Below are positions 3,191 to 49,591 of a stretch of 64,000 nt of DNA, one piece after another. Source of the stretch: Malacoraja senta. Taxonomy: Eukaryota. The position numbers were made by a program, and so were the translations under genes. Location of the stretch: contig CM075977.1 in the NCBI GenBank assembly GCA_038087875.1, positions 125,736,001 to 125,800,000 on the forward strand. The letters are read 5' to 3'. Position 1 is the first letter of the stretch. Each line of letters begins with the position of its first letter. The notes under the pieces are model-generated. The model was given only the letters and a program-made list of their open reading frames with translations, searched no databases and was not told the origin of the DNA.

Positions 3191-3506
3191 TGGCCCTGTC
3201 CCACGATGCGAGTTCATTCAAGAGCTCTCCCGAGTAAAAAAAAAAATCAAACTCGTGGTAAGCACGGAGAATGAACATAGCGGGTACGTCGGAGCTCGGG
3301 GACATCTCTTAGCGGCTCGTAACGCTAACGGCAGGTACTCGGGAAGACTCGCTAATGGCAAGTAAGCCCGGGAAGACTCGTGAAGATTTTTCAACATGCT
3401 GAAAAATGTCCACAAGAGCCTCGAGTACCGACGAGCAGCCATTACCGTAAATCAGGGCAAACTCGGGAGAACTCTTTGAATGAACTCGTACAGTGGGACA
3501 GGGCTT
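3191..3506. mobile_element. PIF/Harbinger-type MITE
   Basis: TIR GCCCTGTCCCAC; TTA on both sides; same family as 49261-49591 in opposite orientation. Confidence 0.8.
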
Positions 3507-4177: not shown

Positions 4178-4271
4178 TAGACACAAAATACTGGAGTAAC
4201 TCAGTGGTACAGGCAGCATCTCTGGAGAGAAGGGATGGGTGACGTTTCAAGTCAAGACCCTTCTTCAGACT
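4178..4271 (-). repeat. Penelope-derived short repeat with degenerate hammerhead-like core
   Basis: Matches the ends of the GIY-YIG-bearing element at 61591-62993. Confidence 0.7.
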
Positions 4272-6721: not shown

Positions 6722-8692
6722 TAGAAACATAGAAACATAGAAAGTAGGTGCGAGAGTAGACCACCAGGCCCATCGAGCCCGCACCGACATTCGCTCATGG
6801 CTGAACACCAAACAGACACCCTTACCCACAAACAGTAGACACAAGACACAGAACACAAGACACTACCCTCCCCTTTATACCGCTATCACCCCTCTCCACC
6901 CCAAGAACCGCGTGATCTCCTGGGGGAGGCAAAAAACCGGATAAAAACCCAGGTCCAATTCGGGAAAAAAATCCGGGAAATTCCTCTCCGACCCCAATCC
7001 AGGCGATCGACACTTGTCCTGGAGATCACTCAGATCTTACTATACTAACCATACCTAGGTCCATATCCCTGCCCTCTCCCCGTAGCCCCTTATCCCCTTG
7101 GCAGCTAAAAAACCATCTATTTTAGACTTAAATATATTTAATGTTTCTGCTTCCACTGCTCCCTGGTGCAGTGAATTCCATAAATTAACCACCCTCTGGG
7201 TGAAGAAGTTCTTCCTCATCTCAGTTTTAAAAGAGCCCCCCCTTATTCTACAACTATGTCCCCTAGTTCTAGTTTCCCCGATCATTGGGAACATCCTCGG
7301 TGCATCCACCCGATCAAGGCCCCTCACGATCTTATATGTTTCAATGAGATCGCCTCTCATTCTTCTAAACTCCAAAGAGTAGAGTTCCAGCCTACTTAAC
7401 CTTTCCTCATATGTCAATCCCCTCATTGCAGGAATTAATCTTGTAAACCTTCGCTGCACTGCCTCCAGGGCCAGTACATCCTTTCTTAAGTATGGACCCC
7501 AGAACTGTACACAGTATTCCAAATGTGGTCTCACTAATACTGTGTACAGCTGCAGCAAGACCTCCGTGTTTTTATACTCAATCCCCCTAGCAATAAAGGC
7601 CAAAACTCCATTGGCCTTCCTGATTGCTTGCTGCACCTGCATACTAACTTTTAGTGATTCATGTACTACTACCCCTAGATCCCTTTGCGTTGCATTACAA
7701 CGCAGCTCCACCTCATTTAGAAAATAACTTGCCCTATCATTTTTTTTCCCAAAGTGAATGACTTCACATTTATTAGTATTAAATTTCATCTGCCAAGTTG
7801 TTGCCCACTCACCTAGCTTATCTATATCCTTTTGCAAACTCTTCCTATCCTCCTCATCCCCTACTTTTCCTCCCATTTTTGTATCGTCCGCAAATTTTGA
7901 TATATTACACTTGGTTCCCTCCTCCAAATCATTTATATAAATTGTGAACAACTGGGGTCCCAGCACCGACCCTTGCGGAACCCCGCTAGTTACCGGTTGC
8001 CATCCCGAGTATGAACCATTTATCCCCACTCTCTGCTTCCTATTTGTTAGCCAATCCTCTACCCATGCTAATATATTACCCCCAATCCCATAATTTTTTA
8101 TTTTTAGCAATAGTCTCTTATGTGGCACCTTGTCAAAAGCCTTTTGGAAGTCCAAGTATACCACATCCACCGGTTCCCCTTTATCCACCCGGGTTGTTAC
8201 TTCCTCAAAGAATTCGAGCAGATTCGTTAAACAGGACTTCCCCTTCACAAAACCATGCTGGTTCTGTCCGATGAAGTCATGTTTATCCAAGTGCCCCGTT
8301 AGTGTTTCTTTAATAATTGTCTCTAACATTTTACCCACCACCGATGTTAGACTAACCGGTCTATAGTTACCCGCCTTCTGTTTACTTCCTTTTTTAAATA
8401 TAGGTGTTACATTGGCCATTTTCCAATCCACTGGGACCGTTCCTGCCTCCAGGGAGTTTTGGAAAATTATCACCAATGCATCCACAATCCCCACCGCTAT
8501 CTCCCTCAAGACCCTTGGATGTAATCCATCAGGCCCAGGGGATTTATCCTCCTTCAGTCTCATTAATTTCCCTAATACCACCTCCTTGGTGATCTTAATA
8601 GTATTTAGCTCCTCCATTCCTACCGCCCCCTGTTTATCCAGCGTTGGAATATTTTTTGTGTCTTCTATGGTGAAGACTGATACAAAATACTC
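6722..8692 (-). mobile_element. Young 5'-truncated CR1 LINE with open RT frame (7055-8692) inserted in Gypsy RNase H
   Basis: Uninterrupted ~545-aa RT/C-terminal ORF; (GTTTCTAT)n tail; TSD GAGCA (6717-6721, 8693-8697); removing it restores NKPIHAA|PARLQR. Confidence 0.95.
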
Positions 8693-10133
8693 GAGCAGCA
8701 TGTATAGGCTTGTTTAAAATGGTGACGAAAGGCTGGTGGTCAGTCTCAATGGTTACAGCCTTACCAAAGATGTAATAGTTGAATTTGACACATGCAAAGG
8801 CCACCGCCAGCAATTCCTTCTCGATCTGAGCATACCTCGTCTCCGTGTCCATCATTGTTCTAGTAGCGTAGGAAACAGGCTTGCCATCCAGCGGGCACGC
8901 TGCACCGAGGCTGTACTGGGATGCGTCGCAGGTCAAAGTGACAGGCTGATTGACATCGAAATAAACCAGAGTAGGGGGGCACAATATCTGTTGTTTGAGT
9001 GTGTAAAAAGCACGTTGCTGTTGTTCGTGCCACGTCCAGGCAGTGTCTTTGTGAGTAAGCTGTCGTAGGGGAGCCAAGAGCTCGCTGAAGTTGGGAGTGA
9101 ACTTCCCGAGGTAATTAACCATGCCCAGAAATCTCTGCAGGCTGGCAACATCTGTTGGCGCTGACATCTCGCTGATAGCTGTAGTCTTGGAAGGATCTGC
9201 TTTGAGGCCGTCACTTGTGAAAACATGACCCACGTAGCTCATCTAGTTAACACAGAACCGACACTTGTGGGGATTGAGTTTCAAGTTCACTTCCCAGGCA
9301 TGCTCGAGCACTTTAAATTCGCATCATGCTGTTCCATGTCTTTGCCGGTAACAATAATGTTGTCTACGATGATTGCACAAGGGAATCTATCAAAGAGTTG
9401 TTCCATAGAACGCTGAAACACCTCACTGGCCGAGTTGATACCGAACGGCATCCGCAAGAATCTGTAGCGGCCGAAAGCGGTGCTGAAGGTGGTAAGCATA
9501 GATGATGCATGATCCAGGGGGATTTGCCAGAAGAAGCTCTTGGTGTCTAACACAGAGAATACTGCTGCCTTACCCATGTTGGCAGCTACCTCCTCCATGG
9601 TACGCATGAGGTGATGGGGCCTTTTGAGTGTGGTGTTTAGGTCCCTGGGATTGATACAAATGCGAATCTCCTGCTTGTTCTTCGTGGCAGTTACCATTGA
9701 GGATACCCAGTCAGTGGGTTGCGAAACAGGTATATTGACTCCCAGTGCTTCCTTTCTGTCCAGTTCGGCTTTGACCGGGTCTCGCATGGCATTGGGTACA
9801 CGGTGAGCAGGACGAGCCATGGGTCTTACCTCTTACATAGAATACGTAATCGGTAGCTTACCAAGCTCCTCGGTGAAAAGATCATGATAGTCTGTGAGAA
9901 TACGCTGTGTTGAATCAGGAGCTGGAGTTCGTTGATGCACAGCCTTGCTGAAGGAAACCAGTCCTATAACTTTGCAGACATCATAGCCCAAAAGTGGTAC
10001 AACCTTGCTGTCGACGACATATAACTCCAGCTTGTATAGAAACATAGAAACATAGAAATTAGGTGCAGGAGTAGGCCATTCGGCCCTTCGAGCCTGCACC
10101 GCCATTCAATATGATCATGGCTGATCATCCAAC

Positions 10134-13100
10134 TCAGTATCCCGTACCTGCCTTCTCTCCATACCCTCTGATCCCTTTAGCCACAAGGGCCACATCTAGC
10201 TCCCTCTTAAATATAACCAATGAACTGGCCTCGACTACCCTCTGTGGCAGAGAGTTCCAGAGATTCACCACTCTCTGTGTGAAAAAAGTTCTTCTCATCT
10301 CGGTTTTAAAGGATTTCCCCCTTATCCTTAAGCTGTGACCCCTTGTCCTGGACTTCCCCAACATCGGGAGCAATCTTCCTGCATCTAGCCTGTCCAACCC
10401 CTTAAGAATTTTGTAAGTTTCTATAAGATCCCCTCTCAATCTCCTAAATTCTAGAGAGTATAAACCAAGTCTATCCAGTCTTTCTTCATAAGACAGTCCT
10501 GACATCCCAGGAATCAGTCTGGTGAACCTTCTCTGCACTCCCTCTATGGCAATAATGTCCTTCCTCAGATTTGGAGACCAAAACTGTACGCAATACTCCA
10601 GGTGTGGTCTCACCAAGACCCTGTACAACTGCAGTAGAACCTCCCTGCTCCTATACTCAAATCCTTTTGCTATGAAAGCTAACATACCATTCGCTTTCTT
10701 CTCTGCCTGCTGCACCTGCATGCCTACTTTCAATGACTGGTGTACCATGACACCCAGGTCTCGCTGCATCTCCCCTTTTCCTAGTCGGCCACCATTTAGA
10801 AAATAGTCTGCTTTCCTGTTTTTGCCACCAAAATGGATAACCTCACATTTATCCACATTATACTGCATCTGCCAAACATTTGCCCACTCACCCAGCCTAT
10901 CCAAGTCACCTTGCAGTCTCCTAGCATCCTCCTCACAGCTAACACTGCCCCCCAGCTTAGTGTCATCCGCAAACTTGGAGATATTGCCTTCAATTCCCTC
11001 ATCCAGGTCATTAATATATATTGTAAATAGCTGGGGTCCCAGCACTGAGCCTTGCGGTACCCCACTAGTCACTGCCTGCCATTGTGAAAAGGACCCGTTT
11101 ACTCCTACTCTTTGCTTCCTGTTTGCCAGCCAGTTCTCTATCCACATCAATACTGAACCCCCAATGCCATGTGCTTTAAGTTTGTATACTAATCTCTTAT
11201 GTGGGACCTTGTCGAAAGCCTTCTGGAAGTCCAGATACACCACATCCACTGGTTCTCCCCTATCCACGCTACTAGTTACATCCTCGAAAAATTCTATAAG
11301 ATTCGTCAGACATGATTTACCTTTCGTAAATCCATGCTGACTTTGTCCAATGATTTCACCACTTTCCAAATGTGCTGCTATCCCATCTTTAATAACTGAC
11401 TCTAGCAGTTTCCCCACTACCGATGTTAGACTAACTGGTCTGTAATTCCCCGTTTTCTCTCTCCCTCCCTTCTTAAAAAGTGGGGTTACGTTTGCTACCC
11501 GCCAATCCTCAGGAACTACTCCAGAATCTAAAGAATTTTGAAAGATTATTACTAATGCATCCACTATTTCTGGAGCTACTTCCTTAAGTACTCTGGGATG
11601 CAGCCTATCTGGCCCTGGGGATTTATCGGCCTTTAATCCATTCAATTTACCCAAAACCACTTCCCGACTAACCTGGATTTCACTCAATTCCTCCAACTCC
11701 TTTGACCCGCGGTCCCCTGCTATTTCCGGCAGATTATTTATGTCTTCCTTAGTGAAGACGGAACCAAAGTAGTTATTCAATTGGTCCGCCATATCCTTGT
11801 TCCCCATGATCAACTCACCTGTTTCTGACTGCAAGGGACCTACATTTGTTTTAACTAATCTCTTTCTTTTTACATATTTATAAAAACTTTTGCAGTCAGT
11901 TTTTATGTTCCCTGCCAGTTTTCTTTCATAATCTATTTTTCCTTTCCTAATTAAGCCCTTTGTCCTCCTCTGCTGGTCTCTGAATTTCTCCCAGTCCTCT
12001 GGTATGCTGCTTTTTCTGGCTAATTTGTACGCATCATCTTTCGCTTTGATACCATCCCTGATTTCCCTTGTTATCCACGGATGCACTACCTTCCCTGATT
12101 TATTCTTTTGCCAAACTGGGATGAACAATTTTTGTAGTTCATCCATGCAGTCTTTAAATGTCTTCCATTGCATGTCCACCGTCAACCTTTTAGAATTAAT
12201 TGCCAGTCAATCATGGCCAATTCATGTCTCATACCCTCAAAGTTACCTTTCTTTAAGTTCAGAACCATTGTTTCTGAATTAACAATGTCACTCTCCATCC
12301 TAATGAAGAACTCAACCATATTATGGTCACTCTTGCCCAAGGGGGCACGTACAACAAGACTGCTAACTAACCCTTCCTCATTACTCAATACCCAGTCTAA
12401 AATAGCCTGCTCTCTCGTTGGTTCCTCTACATGTTGATTTAGATAACTATCCCGCATACATTCCAAGAAATCCTCTTCCTCAGCACCCCTGCCAATTTGA
12501 TTCACCCAATCTATATGTAGATTGAAGTCACCCATTATAACTGTTTTGCCTTTGTCGCACGCATTTCTAATTTCCTGTTTGATACCATCTCCAAGTTCAC
12601 TACTACTGCTAGGTGGCCTGTACACAACACCCACCAGCGTTTTCTGCCCCTTAGTGTTTCGCAGCTCTACCCATACCGATTCCACATCCTCGAACCTAAT
12701 GTCCTTCCTTTCCATTGCGTTAATCTCCTCTCTAATCATCAATGCTACCCCACCTCCTTTTCCTTTCTCTCTATCCCTCCTGAATATTGAATATCCCCGG
12801 ATGTTCAGCTCCCAGCTTTGGTCACCCTGGAGCCATGTCTCCGTGATCCCAACTATATCATAGTCATTGATAGCTATCTGCACATTCAACTCATCCACCT
12901 TATTACGAATGCTCCTTGCATTGAGACACAAAGCCTTCAGGCTTGTTTTTACAACACTCTTACCCCTTATACAATTATGTTGAAAAGTGGCCCTTTTTGA
13001 TTTTTGCCCTGGTTTTGTCTGTCTTCCACTTTTACTTTTCACCTTGCTACCTATTGCTTCTACCCTCATTTTACACTCCTCTGTCTCTACGCTCACACAT

Positions 13101-13174
13101 TTAAGAAACCCTTTCCCTTTAACTCCATCCTCCACTATCCCATTCGACACCCCACCCTCCTTATTCAGTTTAAA
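10134..13174 (-). pseudogene. CR1 ORF2 (APE endonuclease + reverse transcriptase) broken by one 1-nt deletion near 12185
   Basis: NARSI, ITETWL, GDFN and SDH endonuclease motifs; GVPQGSVLGP and FADD RT motifs; the two ORFs join as ILKG|LTVDMQW if one base is restored. Confidence 0.92.
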
Positions 13175-14091
13175 ACCACCCGTGTAGCAGTGGCAAACCT
13201 GCCTGCCAGAATGCTGGTCCCACACCTGTTAAGATGCAATCCGTCCCTTTTGTACAGTTCCCCCTTACCCCAAAACAGATCCCAGTGATCTAAGAATCTA
13301 AATCCCTGCCCCGTGCACCAGTTCCTGAGCCACACGTTCAGGTCCCGTATCTCCCTGTTCCTGCTCTCGCCAGCACGAGGAACTGGAAGCAAACCGGAGA
13401 TAACAACCCTGGAGGTCCTGCTTTTCAGCATTTTTCCGAGCTCTCTAAAGTCACGCTGCAGAATATTCATCCCCTTCTTTCTGACATCGTTTGTGCCGAC
13501 ATGCACTACCACTTCCGGATGTTCACCTTCGCCCTCGAGGATTTTCTGCACTCTGTCCGTGACATCCTGGATCCTGGCACCAGGAAGGCAGCACACCATC
13601 CTCGCATCCCGTCTGTTGCCACAGAAACCCCTGTCCGTACCTCTCACAATCGAGTCTCCCACTACAATGGCGTTGCCTGCCTTAGGCCTTTTTGGTTTTG
13701 GCTCAACAGCCCTATTCGCATCGCAAGCCAGTCCGCCGCTCAGTGTAAACACGTCTTCTGTCCCAACAGCTTCTAAGTGGGGGAACCTGTTCACAAGAGG
13801 TACAACACCCGGGGACGTTGGCATTCCATGCTTCCCTCCCTTTCTCACCGTCTCCCACCTTCTCTCTTCCAGTACCTTAGGTGTAACAATCGTACTGTAG
13901 GACTTGTCGAGGAACGACTCCGTTTCTCGGACGAACCGGAGGTCATCCACTTGCTTCTCCAGTTCCCCAACACGGCCCTTCAGGAGCTCTACCTGGATGC
14001 ACTTCTCGCATTTGTAGCAGCCAGAGGCACCAGCGGTGTCCTTGACCTCCCACATACTGCAAGCATCGCACTGAATCAGCTTGCCTGACAT
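13165..14091 (-). CDS. CR1 ORF1p: CxxC..CxxC zinc finger, coiled coil, SGNH/GDSL esterase-like domain
   Basis: Intact 308-aa ORF with VVGDSIVR, HVGTND and DGLHLN motifs. Confidence 0.92.
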   Translation of the reverse strand: MSGKLIQCDACSMWEVKDTAGASGCYKCEKCIQVELLKGRVGELEKQVDDLRFVRETESFLDKSYSTIVTPKVLEERRWETVRKGGKHGMPTSPGVVPLVNRFPHLEAVGTEDVFTLSGGLACDANRAVEPKPKRPKAGNAIVVGDSIVRGTDRGFCGNRRDARMVCCLPGARIQDVTDRVQKILEGEGEHPEVVVHVGTNDVRKKGMNILQRDFRELGKMLKSRTSRVVISGLLPVPRAGESRNREIRDLNVWLRNWCTGQGFRFLDHWDLFWGKGELYKRDGLHLNRCGTSILAGRFATATRVVLN

Positions 14092-15343
14092 CTCCTTCTT
14101 TTGTCTCTACCTCTCAAGCGTATAATTGATCTCCTAGATGGCACTGCAGATTTACAATACCGACCGGGTTGACTTCACTATCACCATATGCCACAAGGGT
14201 GGCAATGCAGGCCTTTAATTGCTCAGCATTCCAAACACGAGGAAACGCATCGCGAGACAAAACATTGCATTTCACTCCAGTGTCTATTTTCATTACAATC
14301 GCATTGTTGTTTACCTTCACAGTGGCCATGGGCTCACTATTTTGCACATTTTGTCTTGCCATGGAATGTGTTTGCAGAATCACGCCGTGCACCTTTGGGT
14401 TATCATCAGTGTTGCTATCAGATAAATCAGACAAAGACTCAGCCTGTAGCAGATTCACGGATTGTTTTATCTTCTCTCTGCTAGGCTGAGATCTGCAACA
14501 TCTCCAGAAATGGTTGCGCCTTTTGCAACCGTGGCAAATTTGGCCAAAAGCGGTGCAACTCTCCCTTCTTGCAGCATGAGAACCACTGCAATTTGTGCAC
14601 TTTCTAATAAATCTTGTCACAGGCTTATCAAACTGTGCTTGCATTGTTATCTCTTGCTTCGGTCGTCTAGGAAACGAAGCCTGGACACTATCAATTCCCA
14701 TGGTGGAATGCTGTGCATCTGTTAGCGTTCTTGCATGACAAACATACAGCTCCTAATTTTTGCAGATAGCGATAGCCCTATCCAAAGTTATGGCAGGGCC
14801 ACGGACAAGCTTTCTTCTTAGTTTGTCGTTAATAAGACCGCACACTAATCTGTCTCTCATAAATTCACCCCGAAGCTCACCAAATCTACAGCTTCTTTGA
14901 TCGCACACACAAATGATTCAATAGTCCCACCCTCATTCTGGTTTCGTGAGAAGAACTTCACCCGTTCGATGAGAGGATTGGCTTGAGGGTCACACAGTTA
15001 TTGAAACTTTCTTTTGAGACATTCCGGGTCATCTGGTGATTCAGCAGGGGTAAAGACCGGAGCTCCACCCTCGACAGGTTGATGAGTCACTTCATCTGCA
15101 TACACAAACTGTAGTGTGCGTTCGTAAGCTTTGTCTCCTGCGAGATTGAGGAACATGCTAACACGTGCAGCAGCCGGCTTATCATAGTGAGATGCAGCAA
15201 TGAAGACATTATACTGTCGTTCGAAGAGGCGCCAACGCTCTCCGATTCTATCAAAAATGAGAGGTTCAGGCTTTTGGAAAGCTTAAGCCATCTCTGAGAG
15301 TGTAAAAAACTCGTAAAGATAGCAGACAAAGTCGATCGAAGTT

Positions 15344-23721: not shown

Positions 23722-24043
23722 TATATGTTTTTTAATACTTTATTAAGAGATAAAGGTTTTGAAGACAAATTACTTTATAAAAGTCGACTGACTGCCTACC
23801 GGAGAGGAGAATAATCTGCGCATGCGCGGTTTTTAAGATTTTTAAAAGCCGACTGACTGTCTACCCTGAGTAATTACTCACGGCACGTGCCTGATCTGGA
23901 GGTATGCGTTTTCACATTTCCATACCCTTTGCCTGATGGGAGAGGTGCGAAGAAGGAGGGGCCAGAGTGCGACTCGTCCTTGAGTATGCTGCTAGCCTTG
24001 CCAAGGCAGTATGAGGTATAAATGGAGTCAATAGAAGGGAGGT

Positions 24044-24154
24044 CTGGAACCTGAAGAGTCTGAAGAAGGGTCTCGACCCGAAATGTCACCCATTCCTTCT
24101 CTCCAGAGATGCTGCCTGTCCCGCTGAGTTACTCCAGCATTTTGTGATCTTCCT
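24044..24154 (+). mobile_element. Penelope-derived short insertion with hammerhead-like core
   Basis: CTGAAGAAGGGTCTCGACCCGAAATGTC; flanked by the 16-bp duplication TCAATAGAAGGGAGGT (24028-24043, 24155-24170). Confidence 0.8.
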
Positions 24155-24190
24155 TCAATAGAAGGGAGGTTGGTTAATGTGATAGTCTGA

Positions 24191-24667
24191 TAGGGTTGCC
24201 AACTGTCCCGTATTAGCTGGAACATCCCGTATATTGGGCTAAATTGGTTTGTCCCATACGGGACCGCCCTTGTCCTGTATTTTACTACTATTCGGGTCGA
24301 GGGGTCGGAGCGCCACGTCCGGCCCTGCTTCACCCGTACCGACGTGGTGCAGCCCATGGAGTACAGCAGCATCACCTAGCCCGTGGCCCCGTCGGTCGGC
24401 AGCCTGGCCAGCTGTCCGACCTTCACTTACCGCCGACACCACCACCCCTCCTTCTAATGGCCGATCATCGGTTCATGAGTTGGATCGGGTGCCGGACCAA
24501 AATTCCTCAGCTGGCCCGCCGGCCGGGCTTTGTGTGCAGTCCAGCACCCGGGCCAACTCATCATTCATCCAGCCACGGCCGAGTCGGTCAAAGAATTGCA
24601 ATCAGGAATTTGTCCCTTATTTTGACCATTTGTCCCTTATTTGGGAGTGAGAAAGTTGGCAACCCTA
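24191..24667. mobile_element. hAT (Blackjack-like) MITE
   Basis: TIR TAGGGTTGCCAACT; 8-bp TSD TAGTCTGA/TGGTCTGA. Confidence 0.85.
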
Positions 24668-35953: not shown

Positions 35954-36274
35954 AAGGTCCCACTGTACGAGGTAATTCAAGAGTTCTCCCGAGTTTTCCG
36001 CTGATTTGAACTCGGAGAATGTCTGTAGCGGGTCCTTAGGAGTTCGTGGATGTCTCGTAGTGGCTCGTACGAGTAAAAAGTAACCATTTATTTCATCACG
36101 AGTATTTTTTAGTCGTGGACATTTTTCACAGTGTTGAAAAAACGTCACGAGTTTACCGGATTTCCCGAGTACCTACCGTTACTTGTACGAGCCGCTACGG
36201 ACATTCTCCGAGTTCGCATCAGGGGAAAACTCGGGAGAACTCTTGATTTACCTCGTACAGTGGGACAGGCCCTT
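35954..36274. mobile_element. PIF/Harbinger-type MITE
   Basis: ~60-bp TIR GTCCCACTGTACGAGGTAA(T)TCAAGAGTTCTCCCGAGTTTTCC. Confidence 0.8.
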
Positions 36275-43756: not shown

Positions 43757-45714
43757 TTTTTCTCAGCTTTTGGGTCGTGGTGCAATGCTTTGCCCAAAGC
43801 TGTGTCTAAACTGAATTTAGTGTTACTTGTGAGAGAGGTCATGTGCCAGGATGCACACGATTCAGTCAATCAGCTCTGTTTAAATATTTTGGTAATTTTA
43901 ATTATTTGAAGAAGAACTTTCTGTTTGTTATAAAATGACTGTAAAAATATCCATAGAAAAAAATCCCTACAGATTTTTGCCTTATCAGCAGTTTGTGTTG
44001 GATAAACTTGAGAAGGTAGATTTTGTCCATTGCTTTTTCTTGTTAGTGAATTTTTACACTATTATTTCAGAACAACTGTCCTCCTGAATACACATTCAGC
44101 CCTCTGATTTGATTTTTTAACATTTCTGCCAAACATATGGTTAACATTCTAGGGCGATAGTGGATCAGAGAATTTCTGTTTCTGTCATCACTCCTGCTCC
44201 TCTCCCCAACCCACCAAGTAAGTGCATTGCTGGTAAATTGGTTATGTGTTAAAAAAAATTGCAAAATCCTAGAATTACATTTTTTGGTCTGTCCCTAGAG
44301 TAGCTAACCCCTAATCACTGCCTTAATATCAGTTCAATTCCAGATATTTGATCTTGTTTGTGGCTGTAGGTTATCAAAGGATTGATATAGATGCTAACAA
44401 TCTTAAACAAAATAAGAAACACTGCATCATATGCTTTTTTGTGGTTCTCTAAAATTTTGTTTTGCACTGCTCCTGTGATGAACCTTGGGATGCTTCACTG
44501 TTAATATACTTATAATTATTTTGATTTGTCATTCCATATTTGTACCTTCCTCTGGTAACAACACTGTAGCATTATTACTGGCAGAAGTTGACATTACAAT
44601 CTACACTACAAATATAAAACTAAGCACAGCATGTATCACTTTTAAAATGGTAATGGTTCAGTTAATCCCAAATTCTAACTTACTTCACCTAATTATAAGT
44701 ACTCGCCTGCTTACGAATGCCCGATGTATGTTTGGGAGACCGACGAGACTGCTGGCATCTTCCACATTATTCCACAATGTTCACATTTCTGACTTGTAAA
44801 CTACGCTAACACCACGGATAATTAACATTCAAAACATTGTGCACTTCTGCACTTTCTGTCCAAAAAGCTAACGGCATTACTCAAAAATGAATCCAGTTGG
44901 CAGTTATGTCAATATTGTGGAACAACACTTAGAATAATCAGTTTTTATATCAGCAATTCTCATCAATAATGCACTGATATATACTTCTATGCCTGGTAGG
45001 TTAATGTGTTCCAGTTTATCAGCCATGTTTCATAATTTAAAAAAAAACAGTTCAGAGGATACCATAGAATTTATAGATGGCTCATTTGTCTACATGCTGT
45101 CAGCTCAAGATATACAATAGTTCAAGGTCGATGCTTCTGTATCTTCACAGGGCAAATAGTACCAGTCAGTGTATGTGGTTCTCGCCAATGAAAACAAACA
45201 TAAAAAGGAAAGCTTTTTTAATTTAAACGGTGAACCATAGAGCTATACATATAATGTACTATTAGTTATTAGTTACCATTAGTTATTAGTTAGATCTGTT
45301 GATTAAGTCAATTAAAATTGAAGTTTTACTTATGTTCTTCGATTAAAATCCACAATAATGGTATAATCTGATTCTGAGCAAGTGGAAGCTCCATATCCAG
45401 AATTTTAAAATCCTTTCTGACTTTAAATATAATAAAGGCTTGTCGACGTTATTTGCGTGATGAAAAATTGTATGCTATATTTGTAAATTATTTGGGAAAA
45501 TTTGCTCAAACGTTCGTTAACATGTCTGGTTTAAAATTGTTTGAAGTATTTTCATCCTTGTCTCAAACAAGAGGGTTTAAGATACAAGGTAGGAGATTCA
45601 GAAGAGATATGTGGGAGAATTATTTTCACCCACTGGGTTGGCTGCAATCCTGAACAGAGAGAGGGTGGTGGAAGAGGCTTGCACCATTTCAGCTGTGTTT
45701 AGAAGAGCACCTAA

Positions 45715-48429
45715 AACCCCTGTCTCACGGTGCGAGCTGACCCACGAGGTACCCCGAGCTTAAAACAAATTTAACTCGTGGTAATCACGTACGATTAACG
45801 TAGCGGGAACGTCGGAACTCGTGGACGCAACTTAGCGACTCTTGGCGCTAACGGCAGGTACCCGTGACACTTGTTAACTCTTGGAAAAATTCAAACATGT
45901 TTAAACTTTTCCACGAGTAAAATGTACTGCTGAAGTTAAAAATTGAAACATTTAAACTCTTTGTAAGAACGTAGTGGCCCGTGAGTTTACCTTAGTGTCT
46001 CGTGAGTCTACCGTGGGCACTCTTTAACTCAGCGGGCAGGCAGCATCTCTGGAGAGAAAGAATGGGTGACGGGATGACTTTTCCAAATTTCTGCTGCGTC
46101 TTTGTGCTCCATCTGCTGCAACTTTAAACTGACATATGACAATCTTAACTCTTCACATTTTACAGGATTGGATGCGAAATCAGTGATATTTTCAAGCAAA
46201 ACATCCAACAGCGCTTTGTCAGGTTGCATGCGCCTGACTTCACCAGTTTGACTGCCTTTACTGTCTGTTTCAGGGCAGCCTCTGAAGCAACTCACTCTTA
46301 CAGTTTGCTCTCCTACGCAACGAGCTTTTCCGACAACGAACTGCTGATTTGGGAAGAATCTAAAACACAACTCTGGCTGTATTTAGGAAATTTTGTAACA
46401 GAGTTTTACATCCCAGACATGAATTCTTTACTGAGACACATCTGTGTGACCTGGGAGTCTCAAGGGGGTGAGATAACAGTCTGGGTCAATGGGAGACGCA
46501 GTGTACGGAAGGTTGGTGATAAGGGTCAGGTTGTGAAAGGGTCTGGTCAGTTTATTCTAGGTCAGGAACAAGACTCAGTCGGTGGAGGTTTTGACGCCAG
46601 TCAGTCGTTTGTCGGAGAGATAACTGTTGTTCACCTGTGGGATCATGTTCTCCAACCCAATGACATAGAGATGATCAGTCAAAGTTGTTTCAGTAAAGGA
46701 GGGAATATAATTGACTGGAGATTAACAATGTTTACATCACGAGGGAACGTAAGAATTAAAGATAATAATGATTGCATGTTTTGACTTTTGTGGAGAGGAA
46801 AATCCAATGTTCTCAAACGGCACTTGTTGAATATGACCTTGCTTTGCGATCTTTCCTCTCTAAACCAGATCAGCAGAAGTAGTGGTGTCGATTCCAGAAT
46901 AAAGGGCTGTTTACGTCGGGGTAAGGGACAACTCGCTGTCCTTCCTGTTTCTCATCACCTTCACTGACAGGGTAATGGCTTCAAACTCAGTACACTAGAG
47001 TCTCGGCCATTCTCCGTCACACATTGAGAGAGGGACGGGGAGTGGGGAACCTTGGTGGATGTCTACAGGGATCAGCAGGATGTAAACTCCAGGGCACTGC
47101 CCCACACACTGACCCTTGACTGAAGCCCAGGGACTGCTCAGAACAGACAAGTCCACCCTCTTTAACCTGACAACATTCACTGACAGTCCCGGGTCCAATG
47201 ATATGGGCTCCACCACGGTTGGGAGTCTCTCCCTGCTGCAGCCTTCTTCCGCCTCAGCAGCCGGTCAAACACCATCCTCAGCCTGTTCCACTGAGGTCAT
47301 CTTCTTGGGCCGCCCTTTGTCTGGGACCTCCCCCTCGACCTTCCTGCCATGAGGCCAGCTTACAGGATCAAGGCACACACATATGTCTCCACTACAAGGT
47401 GGCGACCCTCAGAGATGTCCCAGCCTCACAAACAACTCAACACAATAAATAATGTAAAGCAGCCTGGGGCAAGATGGTTTGCCCATGATATAAATTTTAA
47501 ACGTCATCCCGTCACCCATTCCTTCTCTCCAGAGATGCTGCCTGCCTGCTGAGTGACCATACTGACGGAATTCCCACGTATATGAAGCAGAGAGAAACGT
47601 GAGTTCTACACGGCTCTGCCCGACTTTTGAGAATGGATTCGGTGGTTTGTACCCACTCCCCCTCCCTGCTCACCCACCCACCCACCAAGCCAGCCAGCCG
47701 GACCCCTCCTTGTTACAGCGGCGGAAGCGACATTTCCAAGAGAATGGGGCAGAGAGCTGGGGCAGCGCTGGGATGGGAGCAGGGCAGATGAGGCGCACCA
47801 AAGGAACAAACAAGTTGTTGGCTGCAAGGGGCAGGCGGCAGAGGTCTTGTGCCCCAGCGAGGTAGACCGCTCTTCCCCCTGCAAATGCACACACAGAAAG
47901 AGAGAGATGAGAGCAGAGAATGATCCCAGCCTAGCTCTGGCACTGGACGGTGCGCATTTTCCCTTTGTAGGTCATATCAATAGACGCGGCCACGCTGAAT
48001 TCTACCTTTAAAAAGCCGCAGGATAGAGCTGTCTTCTTTAACACTTGCTTCGCCGCCACCGCCTCCTTGTTGCACAATGGCAGCAAGTGCGGGGCCGAAA
48101 TCTTGCCTAGTTTTTTTAAGTTCTGAAATTGAATAACTTTCAATACTGAATCAGAATATACTTACTGTATGAGATGCTGTCCATCTCCTCTATTTGATAC
48201 TTAAAACAGGCCTTCATTCACGGTTGGCTCAAGAGTAACTCGCGAGAGGAACTTGGTAACTCGGGAGAGGAACTTGGAACATCGCAGAAATGAGAAGTAA
48301 ACGGCAAACTTAGACATACCCGTGGGAACTCAGTTAAACTCTTGATCATAAACTTGGAGTCTCGTACACAACCACAAGTCTTTCACTCGGGGTCACTCGT
48401 GGGTCAATTCGCACCGTGAGACAGGGCTT
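45715..48429. mobile_element. Non-autonomous PIF/Harbinger-type element containing a pentraxin exon cassette
   Basis: TIR AA(C/G)CCCTGTCTCACGGTGCGA..TGACCCACGAG; TAA TSD (45712-45714, 48430-48432); flanks rejoin into an old CR1-like 3' end (gagcaccTAAgtctccaaggcatagaaggctac). Confidence 0.88.
46166..46784 (+). pseudogene. Short pentraxin (CRP/SAP-like) terminal exon, 2-bp frameshift at 46213-46214, no signal-peptide exon nearby
   Basis: Acceptor ttcacattttacAG; GLDAKSVIFSSKTSNS/FVRL..AFTVCFR; signature HICVTWES; ILGQEQDSVGGGFDASQSFVGEI; stop at 46784; AATAAA at 46898-46903. Confidence 0.88.
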
Positions 48430-48919
48430 TAAGTCTCCAAGGCATAGAAGGCTACAGGTTACATAGAAGAGTAGGAGGAGGTGTGGAAAGGAGCTGAATG
48501 GTGAGATGGAGGTTTGCGTGTAGCCCTTGCTCTGGCAATGGAGGCGGAAGACAGACGGGTTGGTTTGGGAAAGGGAATTGAAGTGCCTGAAAACTGGGAG
48601 TTCCAACTGGTCATAGGATAATTACCTGCTTTGCTGAATGCTTGCACTCTGTCTGCCTGGGCCAGCTGAAGCTCCCCATTGTTAGCTACTTCAATTCCCC
48701 TTCCCATTCCCATACTAACCTGTCTGTCTTTTTGCTCAAGACTCCAGTATCTGCAATCTCTTGTGTCTTCAGTTATATTCATGTTAGCTCTTTCTCCTTT
48801 TATGTATGTTGCCTGACCTATGTGTTTAGAGCAATTTCTGTCTTTAATACAGATTTTCAGCATCTGGGTTTCTTTGACTTTCCTTTGCTCTTTGATAAAG
48901 CTGCTTTCTCTTTCACCAG

Positions 48920-49033
48920 CTACATTTAGCAGCTCTGGCATCATTAAAGACGGACATAGTTGATCTCAATAAAAGACTCCAGCATACAGAACGAGAGAGG
49001 GACTTGTTAGAAAAAAAGCTGGCTAAATCCCAG
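48920..49033 (+). CDS. MCC: MCC internal exon LHLAALASLKTDIVDLNKRLQHTERERDLLEKKLAKSQ
   Basis: ttctctttcaccAG acceptor and CAG|gtaagc donor; 114 nt, phase 0-0; matches recalled human LHSAALASLKGDIVELNKRLQQTERERDLLEKKLAKAQ. Confidence 0.95.
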
Positions 49034-49260
49034 GTAAGCTCAAAGCAAAATTGAGTTGCTATTAATAATTAACAGTGCAAACTATTCAGTAAGCTATCTG
49101 CCAATAATGCATATAAAATGTGAAAATATTTAGCTGGAGACACAAACTGTAGATGCTGGAATCTTGAGCAAAACTAAGTGGTGGAGGAACTCAGCAGGGG
49201 CAAATTCTGGCAAGTGATAGGTGGATATAGGTGAGAGGGATTTGCAGTTGGATGGAGTAA

Positions 49261-49591
49261 AACCCCTGTCCCACGGTACGAGTTAATTCCAAGAGTTCTC
49301 CCGAGTTTGCCCTGATTCGAACTCGGAGATTTACGGTAATGGCTGCTCGTAGGTACTCGGGGCTCTCGTGGACATTTTTGAACATGTTGAAAAATCTTTA
49401 CAAGTCTTCCCGTGCTTACCTGCCGTCAGCGAGTCTTCCCAAGTACCTACCGTTAGCGTTACGAGCCGCTAAGAGACGTCCCCGAGCTCCGACGTACCCG
49501 CTACGTTCATTCTCCGTGCTTACCACGAGTTTGATTTTTTTTTAAACTCAGGAGAGCTCTTGGAATGAACTCGTACCGTGGGACAGGGCTT
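49261..49591. mobile_element. PIF/Harbinger-type MITE inserted in an old Penelope-derived repeat (~49135-50040)
   Basis: TIR AA(C/G)CCCTGTCCCACGGTACGAG; TAA TSD. Confidence 0.88.

Follow-up and report, generated by a model that had tools for sequence, protein, structure and literature searches.

The stretch of DNA analysed here, 64,000 nucleotides of contig CM075977.1 of the skate Malacoraja senta (positions 125,736,001 to 125,800,000; in the following termed the window), contains at 45715–48429 a 2715-bp non-autonomous element with terminal inverted repeats at both ends. Its interior includes a piece of a short-pentraxin gene, which will be denoted as the cargo. The element is located 490 bp upstream of an exon of a host gene, with the cargo in sense orientation. 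The features of the locus, in window coordinates, are the following:

45712–45714 (left) and 48430–48432 (right), no strand: target-site duplication TAA, taken from the sequence and from the single TAA in empty-site contigs
45715–45758, plus strand: left terminal inverted repeat, 39 of its 44 positions being matched by the right repeat
45715–46026, plus strand: left part of the non-autonomous element with three ACTCGNG-type subterminal motifs, related to small family members at 3194–3503 and 49264–49588
46027–46089, plus strand: inner inverted-repeat arm, a piece of a hyper-abundant skate repeat, with a 7-nt insertion common to both arms
46090–46165, plus strand: tail of pentraxin intron 1 and splice acceptor, by alignment to the parental orthologues L002 and L003
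46166–46784, plus strand: pentraxin terminal exon, whole, with the stop codon at 46782–46784 and a 2-bp insertion at 46211–46212
46785–47171, plus strand: pentraxin 3′ untranslated region (UTR) and flank, with a conserved AATAAA at 46898–46903 and a 184-bp segment at 46939–47122
47172–47491, plus strand: unrelated interspersed repeat (TE-X), which meets the cargo at a TGAC microhomology
47492–47554, minus strand: inner inverted-repeat arm, 63 nt, 90% complementary to the other arm
47555–48163, no strand: GC-rich non-coding repeat, absent from the L. erinacea copy and far commoner than the cargo
48164–48429, plus strand: right part of the element; it has four subterminal motifs and ends in the right terminal repeat, 48386–48429
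48920–49033, plus strand: host-gene exon of 114 nt (38 codons), phase 0, with ag/gt borders, a single open frame and a predicted coiled coil

An inverted-repeat search pairs 45711–45758 with 48386–48433 (48 nt, 88%), which by hand count leaves terminal inverted repeats of 44 nt with 39/44 matches once the duplicated TAA and one flank base are removed; the 2.7-kb unit with matching ends and a TAA duplication described in an earlier note on this DNA is hereby confirmed. The same terminal sequence recurs in the window at 3194–3503, at 49264–49588 and at a solo end near 36253, and the ends therefore belong to a transposon family and are not a chance pair. TAA or TTA duplications flank four out of four complete family copies, three of them in the window and one in A. 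radiata, and both solo ends show TAA or TTA at the expected offset. Of the 24 occurrences of the motif ACTCG[T/G/C]G or its complement in the 64-kb window, 20 fall inside family members; within the element the motif is confined to the left and right parts with no occurrence in the interior. The left part reaches a word depth tens of thousands-fold over that of the flank. The solo right end of the family at 35980–36270 carries five subterminal motifs followed by TTA, its left end not being found nearby.

Neither Pfam nor open reading frame (ORF) checks detect a transposase domain in the element, and the large ORFs of the window include no transposase either but encode proteins of CR1-type long interspersed nuclear elements (LINEs). 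These CR1-type ORFs, located on the minus strand at 7055–14701, comprise a reverse transcriptase, an endonuclease and an ORF1 with a GDSL-lipase/OSK-like domain. Autonomous Harbinger elements encode a DDE transposase and, in animals, additionally a Myb-like protein, and the target duplication of the PIF/Harbinger superfamily is preferentially TWA. The element displays a 3-bp TWA duplication and terminal repeats within the range of about 25–50 bp, i.e. the usual marks of PIF/Harbinger transposons, a 3-bp target duplication together with 25–50-bp terminal repeats (PMC2572040). By its TWA duplications, terminal repeats and subterminal motifs, and solely by these end features, the element is assigned to the non-autonomous PIF/Harbinger kind.

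Public contigs of four species were aligned to window positions 44800–49200, the window species being represented by two samples (X1 and X2). In the organisms B, C and D the contigs pass from 45711 directly to 48430 with a single TAA and nothing else. These empty-site contigs align over 44800–45711 and 48430–49200, their flanks differing from the window by ~3%, and their depths of 50, 6 and 18, respectively, equal the depth of the flank, as is to be expected of single-copy sequence. In both samples of the window species, contigs cross from unique flank into the element with 0 differences. From the exact empty site in the three sister species and the flank-element contigs it follows that the insertion is genuine and precise and that it took place after the window species had separated from B, C and D. 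The empty site that the earlier note had proposed to look for is thus clean in three sister species, and its statement that the flanks rejoin was correct; the old CR1-like end it had read across them finds no support within the window, since the rejoined flanks, compared with the rest of the window by sensitive BLAST, give no match across the junction.

Within the cargo, the ORF at 46224–46781 matches the Pfam family Pentaxin (PF00354, E 3.7e-52). Among full-length proteins it is closest to A. radiata P0001 (82%) and R. longicauda P0011 (88%), each of which is the final pentraxin gene of a cluster and adjoins an IPPT-domain gene that we take to be TRIT1. Comparison with the loci of these parental orthologues (L002 in R. 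longicauda and L003 in A. radiata) depicts nucleotide collinearity from ~76 bp before the splice acceptor (ttacag|G, 46165/46166) through the exon, the stop codon and the AATAAA signal as far as 47171. The gene-derived cargo accordingly comprises 1082 bp (46090–47171), 387 bp of which lie beyond the stop codon, while no part of the outer element matches L002 or L003. Since collinearity extends into non-coding sequence, the cargo is best read as a DNA-level copy of an intron tail, a terminal exon and a 3′ UTR with flank. Judged from the orthologues in the two other skates next to TRIT1, which answer the earlier suggestion to locate the parent, the source would be the final gene of the pentraxin cluster adjoining that gene. 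In L. erinacea the parent gene was sought by orthology of neighbouring genes, and no close orthologue is present among the matches listed.

The near-complete terminal exon, the acceptor and the poly(A) signal noted previously are all present, but the frame is shifted by +2 at 46211–46212. These two extra bases are peculiar to the window copy, as are an 11-bp deletion in the intron tail and a 23-bp deletion after the stop codon; contigs of other copies in the same species are without the 2-bp insertion. The signal exon (exon 1) and a start codon are absent from the cargo and its reading frame is broken, so that it does not constitute a complete short-pentraxin gene. The gene-derived 3′ part is also shorter than the ~600 bp formerly assumed, because 47172–47554 consists of an unrelated repeat and an inverted-repeat arm. 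Likewise, the positions given earlier as cargo junctions, ~46027 and ~47554, turn out to be the outer ends of the 63-nt inner inverted repeat and not those of the gene fragment (46090 and 47171). In A. radiata, a small TTA-flanked member of the same transposon family is situated in intron 1 of the parental pentraxin gene (L003 10683–10981), ~210 bp upstream of the start of the captured fragment, and is absent from R. longicauda L002. This vicinity may be a coincidence or may hint that such members helped the capture.

A second structural form of the cargo-bearing element is found in L. erinacea, where P0005, an annotated 154-aa 'mucosal pentraxin-like' model, resides on another chromosome than the pentraxin cluster of the species. 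Outside the element, its locus L001 has only interspersed repeats in common with the window. Within it, L001 9547–10962 corresponds to window 45760–47171 and L001 11564–11805 to window 48164–48427, the latter ending in the terminal repeat and TAA. The junctions between outer-left part and arm and between arm and intron are identical in L001 and the window. The right arm and the segment 47172–48163 are missing from L001; instead, another 601 bp of the parental 3′ flank follow, up to a junction with the right part at a common ACTG, while in the window the parental sequence switches to TE-X at a shared TGAC. The left end of L001 is rearranged, with an inverted duplicate of the left subterminal region followed by a ~300-bp interspersed repeat (9077–9186, 9233–9539), and its left terminal repeat is missing.

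In the window species the collapsed cargo contigs have depths of 900–1399 as compared to 19.7 for the flank in X1 (46–71x) and of 94–110 as compared to 3 in X2 (31–37x), which suggests roughly 30–70 copies of the cargo, contig depth not being a true copy number. The outer-left/arm and arm/intron junctions are also crossed by contigs from species without this insertion, B and C among them, and the organisms E and G hold 34–42% of the 31-mers of the cargo. Contigs of B, C and D that cover 47155 end 17–18 nt later, and the junction 47171/47172 is crossed only by contigs of the window species; hence the lineage of the window species may be where the 2.7-kb form originated and multiplied. The same left junction at the unrelated L001 locus, together with the multi-copy depth, establishes that the cargo travelled with the element.

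A parent-derived gene fragment between terminal repeats, the lack of a transposase and the same junction at unrelated loci are the characteristics of a Pack-type element, and all of them are found here. We consider it very probable that the sequence is one copy of a non-autonomous cut-and-paste transposon of the PIF/Harbinger kind, a Pack-type (transduplicating) element with a genomic piece of a short-pentraxin gene. Several points weigh against this reading. The superfamily is assigned in the absence of a transposase-bearing partner sharing these terminal repeats, and the skate genome was not searched for one. The flank-element junction unitigs end 19–23 nt inside the element, short of the 31-nt rule for bridging, as the repeat branches the assembly graph, and they may derive from the same sample as the assembly. 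In addition to the stated weakness of the depth estimate, the rearrangements that connect the two structural forms may have occurred in more than one order. Finally, the comparison of the window copy with L001, based on 23 differences, gives a ratio of nonsynonymous to synonymous rates (dN/dS) of 0.26, which taken alone would suggest constraint.

The latter value leads to the question of whether the carried exon is functional, be it as a domesticated module, as a mobile cassette of acceptor and poly(A) signal that alters host transcripts, or as a source of small RNA directed against the parent. Besides dN/dS, such a role could draw on the collapsed family contigs, which are without any frame-breaking indel over 46186–46793 once the private 2 bp are removed, on the annotation of L001 as a gene, and on the sense orientation of the cargo so close to a host exon. 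However, neither signal exon nor start codon is present, and both sequenced copies are broken independently, L001 by two independent -2 deletions and the window copy by +2. The nonsynonymous rate of 0.025 equals the rate of the non-coding cargo (about 0.03), and the exon has diverged by 3.8% as compared to 3.6% for the 3′ flank. Constraint as an explanation of the dN/dS value was therefore set aside, exon, intron tail and 3′ flank having diverged alike. With a private frameshift and an exon that diverges no slower than the non-coding cargo, no constraint is seen and the exon looks like a neutrally decaying passenger. A host transcript spliced in phase 0 into 46166 would reach a stop codon after six codons, so that truncation and not fusion would result. 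Altogether, a function of the exon appears unlikely. The vertebrate Pack-Harbinger dispersing pentraxin domains that the earlier note envisaged stands as far as the multi-copy spread is concerned, but only dead DNA copies are dispersed, and neither function nor selection was found.

As to the annotations involved, the P0005 gene model (L001 10001–10465) coincides with the transposon-borne, twice frameshifted exon, and the C-terminus of the P0011 model repeats the shifted frame. A frameshift common to L. erinacea P0005 and R. longicauda P0011 (C-terminal NDRDDQ...) was considered and rejected, since it is not present in the R. longicauda DNA and is an artifact of a 'low quality' model. Regarding the host exon, long RNA-type contigs of the organisms C and I match only 48920–49033 of the locus, with 99–100% identity, and the exon defines the strand of the host gene. 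An Atlas search with its 38 amino acids returned only generic coiled-coil clusters and thus no confirmation of MCC, the host gene named in the earlier note.

Alternatively, the cargo could be a processed retrocopy of a pentraxin mRNA residing inside a DNA transposon, in line with the presence of the entire terminal exon and a poly(A) signal. This is very unlikely, however, because ~76 bp of intron and the acceptor are kept, exon 1 is absent and there is no poly(A) tail; moreover, the cargo of L001 runs ~830 bp past the stop codon, beyond both AATAAA signals and collinear with the parental locus. The intron tail and the sequence past the poly(A) signal thus bear out the previous reading of a capture of unspliced or genomic sequence. 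An unspliced read-through RNA might conceivably have served as the template.

Still less probable is a one-off secondary insertion of the pentraxin cassette after the element had landed in the intron, for example as a nested element bounded by the 63-nt repeat. Indeed, 46027–47554 is bracketed by this inverted repeat of 90%, but no target duplication is present at its ends and L001 is devoid of the right arm. The cargo is multi-copy, the outer-left/arm and arm/intron junctions are the same at an unrelated L. erinacea locus, and contigs of B and C cross them although this insertion is absent there. The option left in the earlier note, that the cassette arrived after insertion at this site, is thereby refuted by the shared left junction and the 30–70-fold depth. 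That the assembly artificially joined a transposon to a pentraxin gene is barely conceivable: short-read unitigs do break within the repeats and no single contig covers the whole element, but the empty site is exact, as is the 3-bp duplication, flank-element unitigs show 0 differences in two samples, and the same chimeric left junction recurs in the independent assembly of a second species.

The remainder of the Pack-type element is a mosaic. TE-X, a copy of which is located in A. radiata at L003 17174–17493, is 15–60 times commoner than the cargo in the organisms C and D by contig depth. The part 47182–47497 has a match 5 kb downstream of the parent gene in A. radiata and was considered as belonging to a single long capture; this was rejected, its far greater abundance than the cargo in C and D identifying it as an independent repeat. 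The ORFs of the GC-rich segment 47555–48163 give no protein signal in Pfam or Atlas searches, and the segment is consequently read as a non-coding repeat.

The two inner arms represent the same stretch of a repeat occurring at millions of word-depth units, with identical outer and inner limits and, relative to generic copies of this repeat, the same 7-nt insertion. Their equal limits and common insertion indicate that one arm was copied from the other, or both from a single small palindromic unit. In public contigs, the arm repeat in its generic form is often palindromic, with ~24–37 nt between the arms; no target duplication flanking the arms is discernible in the sequence. Further copies of the source repeat are located in the window at 4180–4270, 24040–24150, 53186, 61625 and 62907. 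Rfam, whose models may not extend to minimal Penelope hammerheads, reports no family at gathering score in the whole window, and with the same reservation as to coverage it finds no hammerhead up to E=10 in the generic copy at 23980–24200. On visual inspection, CUGAAGA...GAAA is present in the generic repeat, a sequence that recalls the core of a hammerhead.

The age of the capture was approached by distances over the 883 columns common to all sequences. The window copy and L001 are 0.035 apart, either copy is separated from either parental orthologue by 0.095–0.10, and the two parental orthologues differ from each other by 0.107. The 184-bp segment at 46939–47122 is present in both transposon copies and in a neighbouring paralogue, and is missing from both sampled parental orthologues. 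In an RNA-type run of organism I, high-depth contigs cover this segment and continue into parent-type sequence beyond 47171, which indicates that the true source lineage probably still keeps it. By these distances the capture would be dated no closer than between about 3.5% and 10% divergence. From the collapsed family contigs of the window species, the window copy itself differs by ~1.7%.

As for the mobility and origin of the Pack-type element, an autonomous relative would supply in trans the transposase and the Myb-like protein that move it. Microhomology joints and filler are products of abortive gap repair with template switching, as established for Pack-MULEs, Ds and P-element derivatives. 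Given that the pieces of the mosaic interior are joined at microhomologies of 3–4 nt, cargo and other interior pieces may likewise have been copied in as filler during the repair of a double-strand break, perhaps one in the middle of a small palindromic repeat that the element had contained beforehand. The simplest reading of the two forms would be a single capture with a common left junction, followed by differing deletions or replacements, the 2.7-kb form then being a rearranged derivative which multiplied mainly in the window species. More tentatively, and rather doubtful at present, the palindrome of the two 63-nt arms, possibly derived from a Penelope element, might itself have acted as the fragile site at the center of which repair copied in host DNA. 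If true, this would give cut-and-paste transposons in a vertebrate genome a concrete and repeatable route to the capture of genes, and the sense-oriented cassette of acceptor and poly(A) signal would represent a naturally mobile gene trap.

Among known systems, the plant Pack-MULE and Pack-TYPE elements (PMC5861414, PMC8903248) are similar in being non-autonomous elements with terminal repeats and a target duplication that hold a DNA-level host gene fragment including intron sequence, in their amplification after capture and in their mosaic interior. They belong to Mutator, CACTA or hAT, however, whereas the skate element is of the PIF/Harbinger kind with a TWA 3-bp duplication, resides in a vertebrate host and combines one gene fragment with repeat-derived filler. 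Turmoil-1 of C. elegans (PMC2572040) is, like the skate element, an animal PIF/Harbinger-type element with transduplicated protein-coding host sequence. In contrast, it is autonomous, carries the fragments inside 760-bp terminal repeats and exists in one complete copy, while the skate element has no transposase, holds a whole exon with splice and poly(A) signals in its interior and is present in tens of copies. The Helitrons of vespertilionid bats (PMC4224331) are also vertebrate DNA transposons that spread host gene fragments to many loci, but by a rolling-circle mechanism and with neither terminal inverted repeats nor target duplications. A literature search retrieved no report linking pentraxins, skates and transposons, and none of gene capture by Harbinger elements in elasmobranchs.

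Capture of gene fragments by cut-and-paste transposons is common in plants and has rarely been documented in vertebrates. The element described here is an unusually clean vertebrate case, with an exact empty site, an identified source gene, two forms sharing a capture junction, and amplification after the capture. Public annotation already lists the L. erinacea copy as a pentraxin gene, a warning that such copies can inflate pentraxin gene counts. For the biology of skates, the case shows that a Harbinger-type family has been mobile recently and is able to scatter an immune-gene exon, complete with splice and poly(A) signals, among introns elsewhere in the genome.

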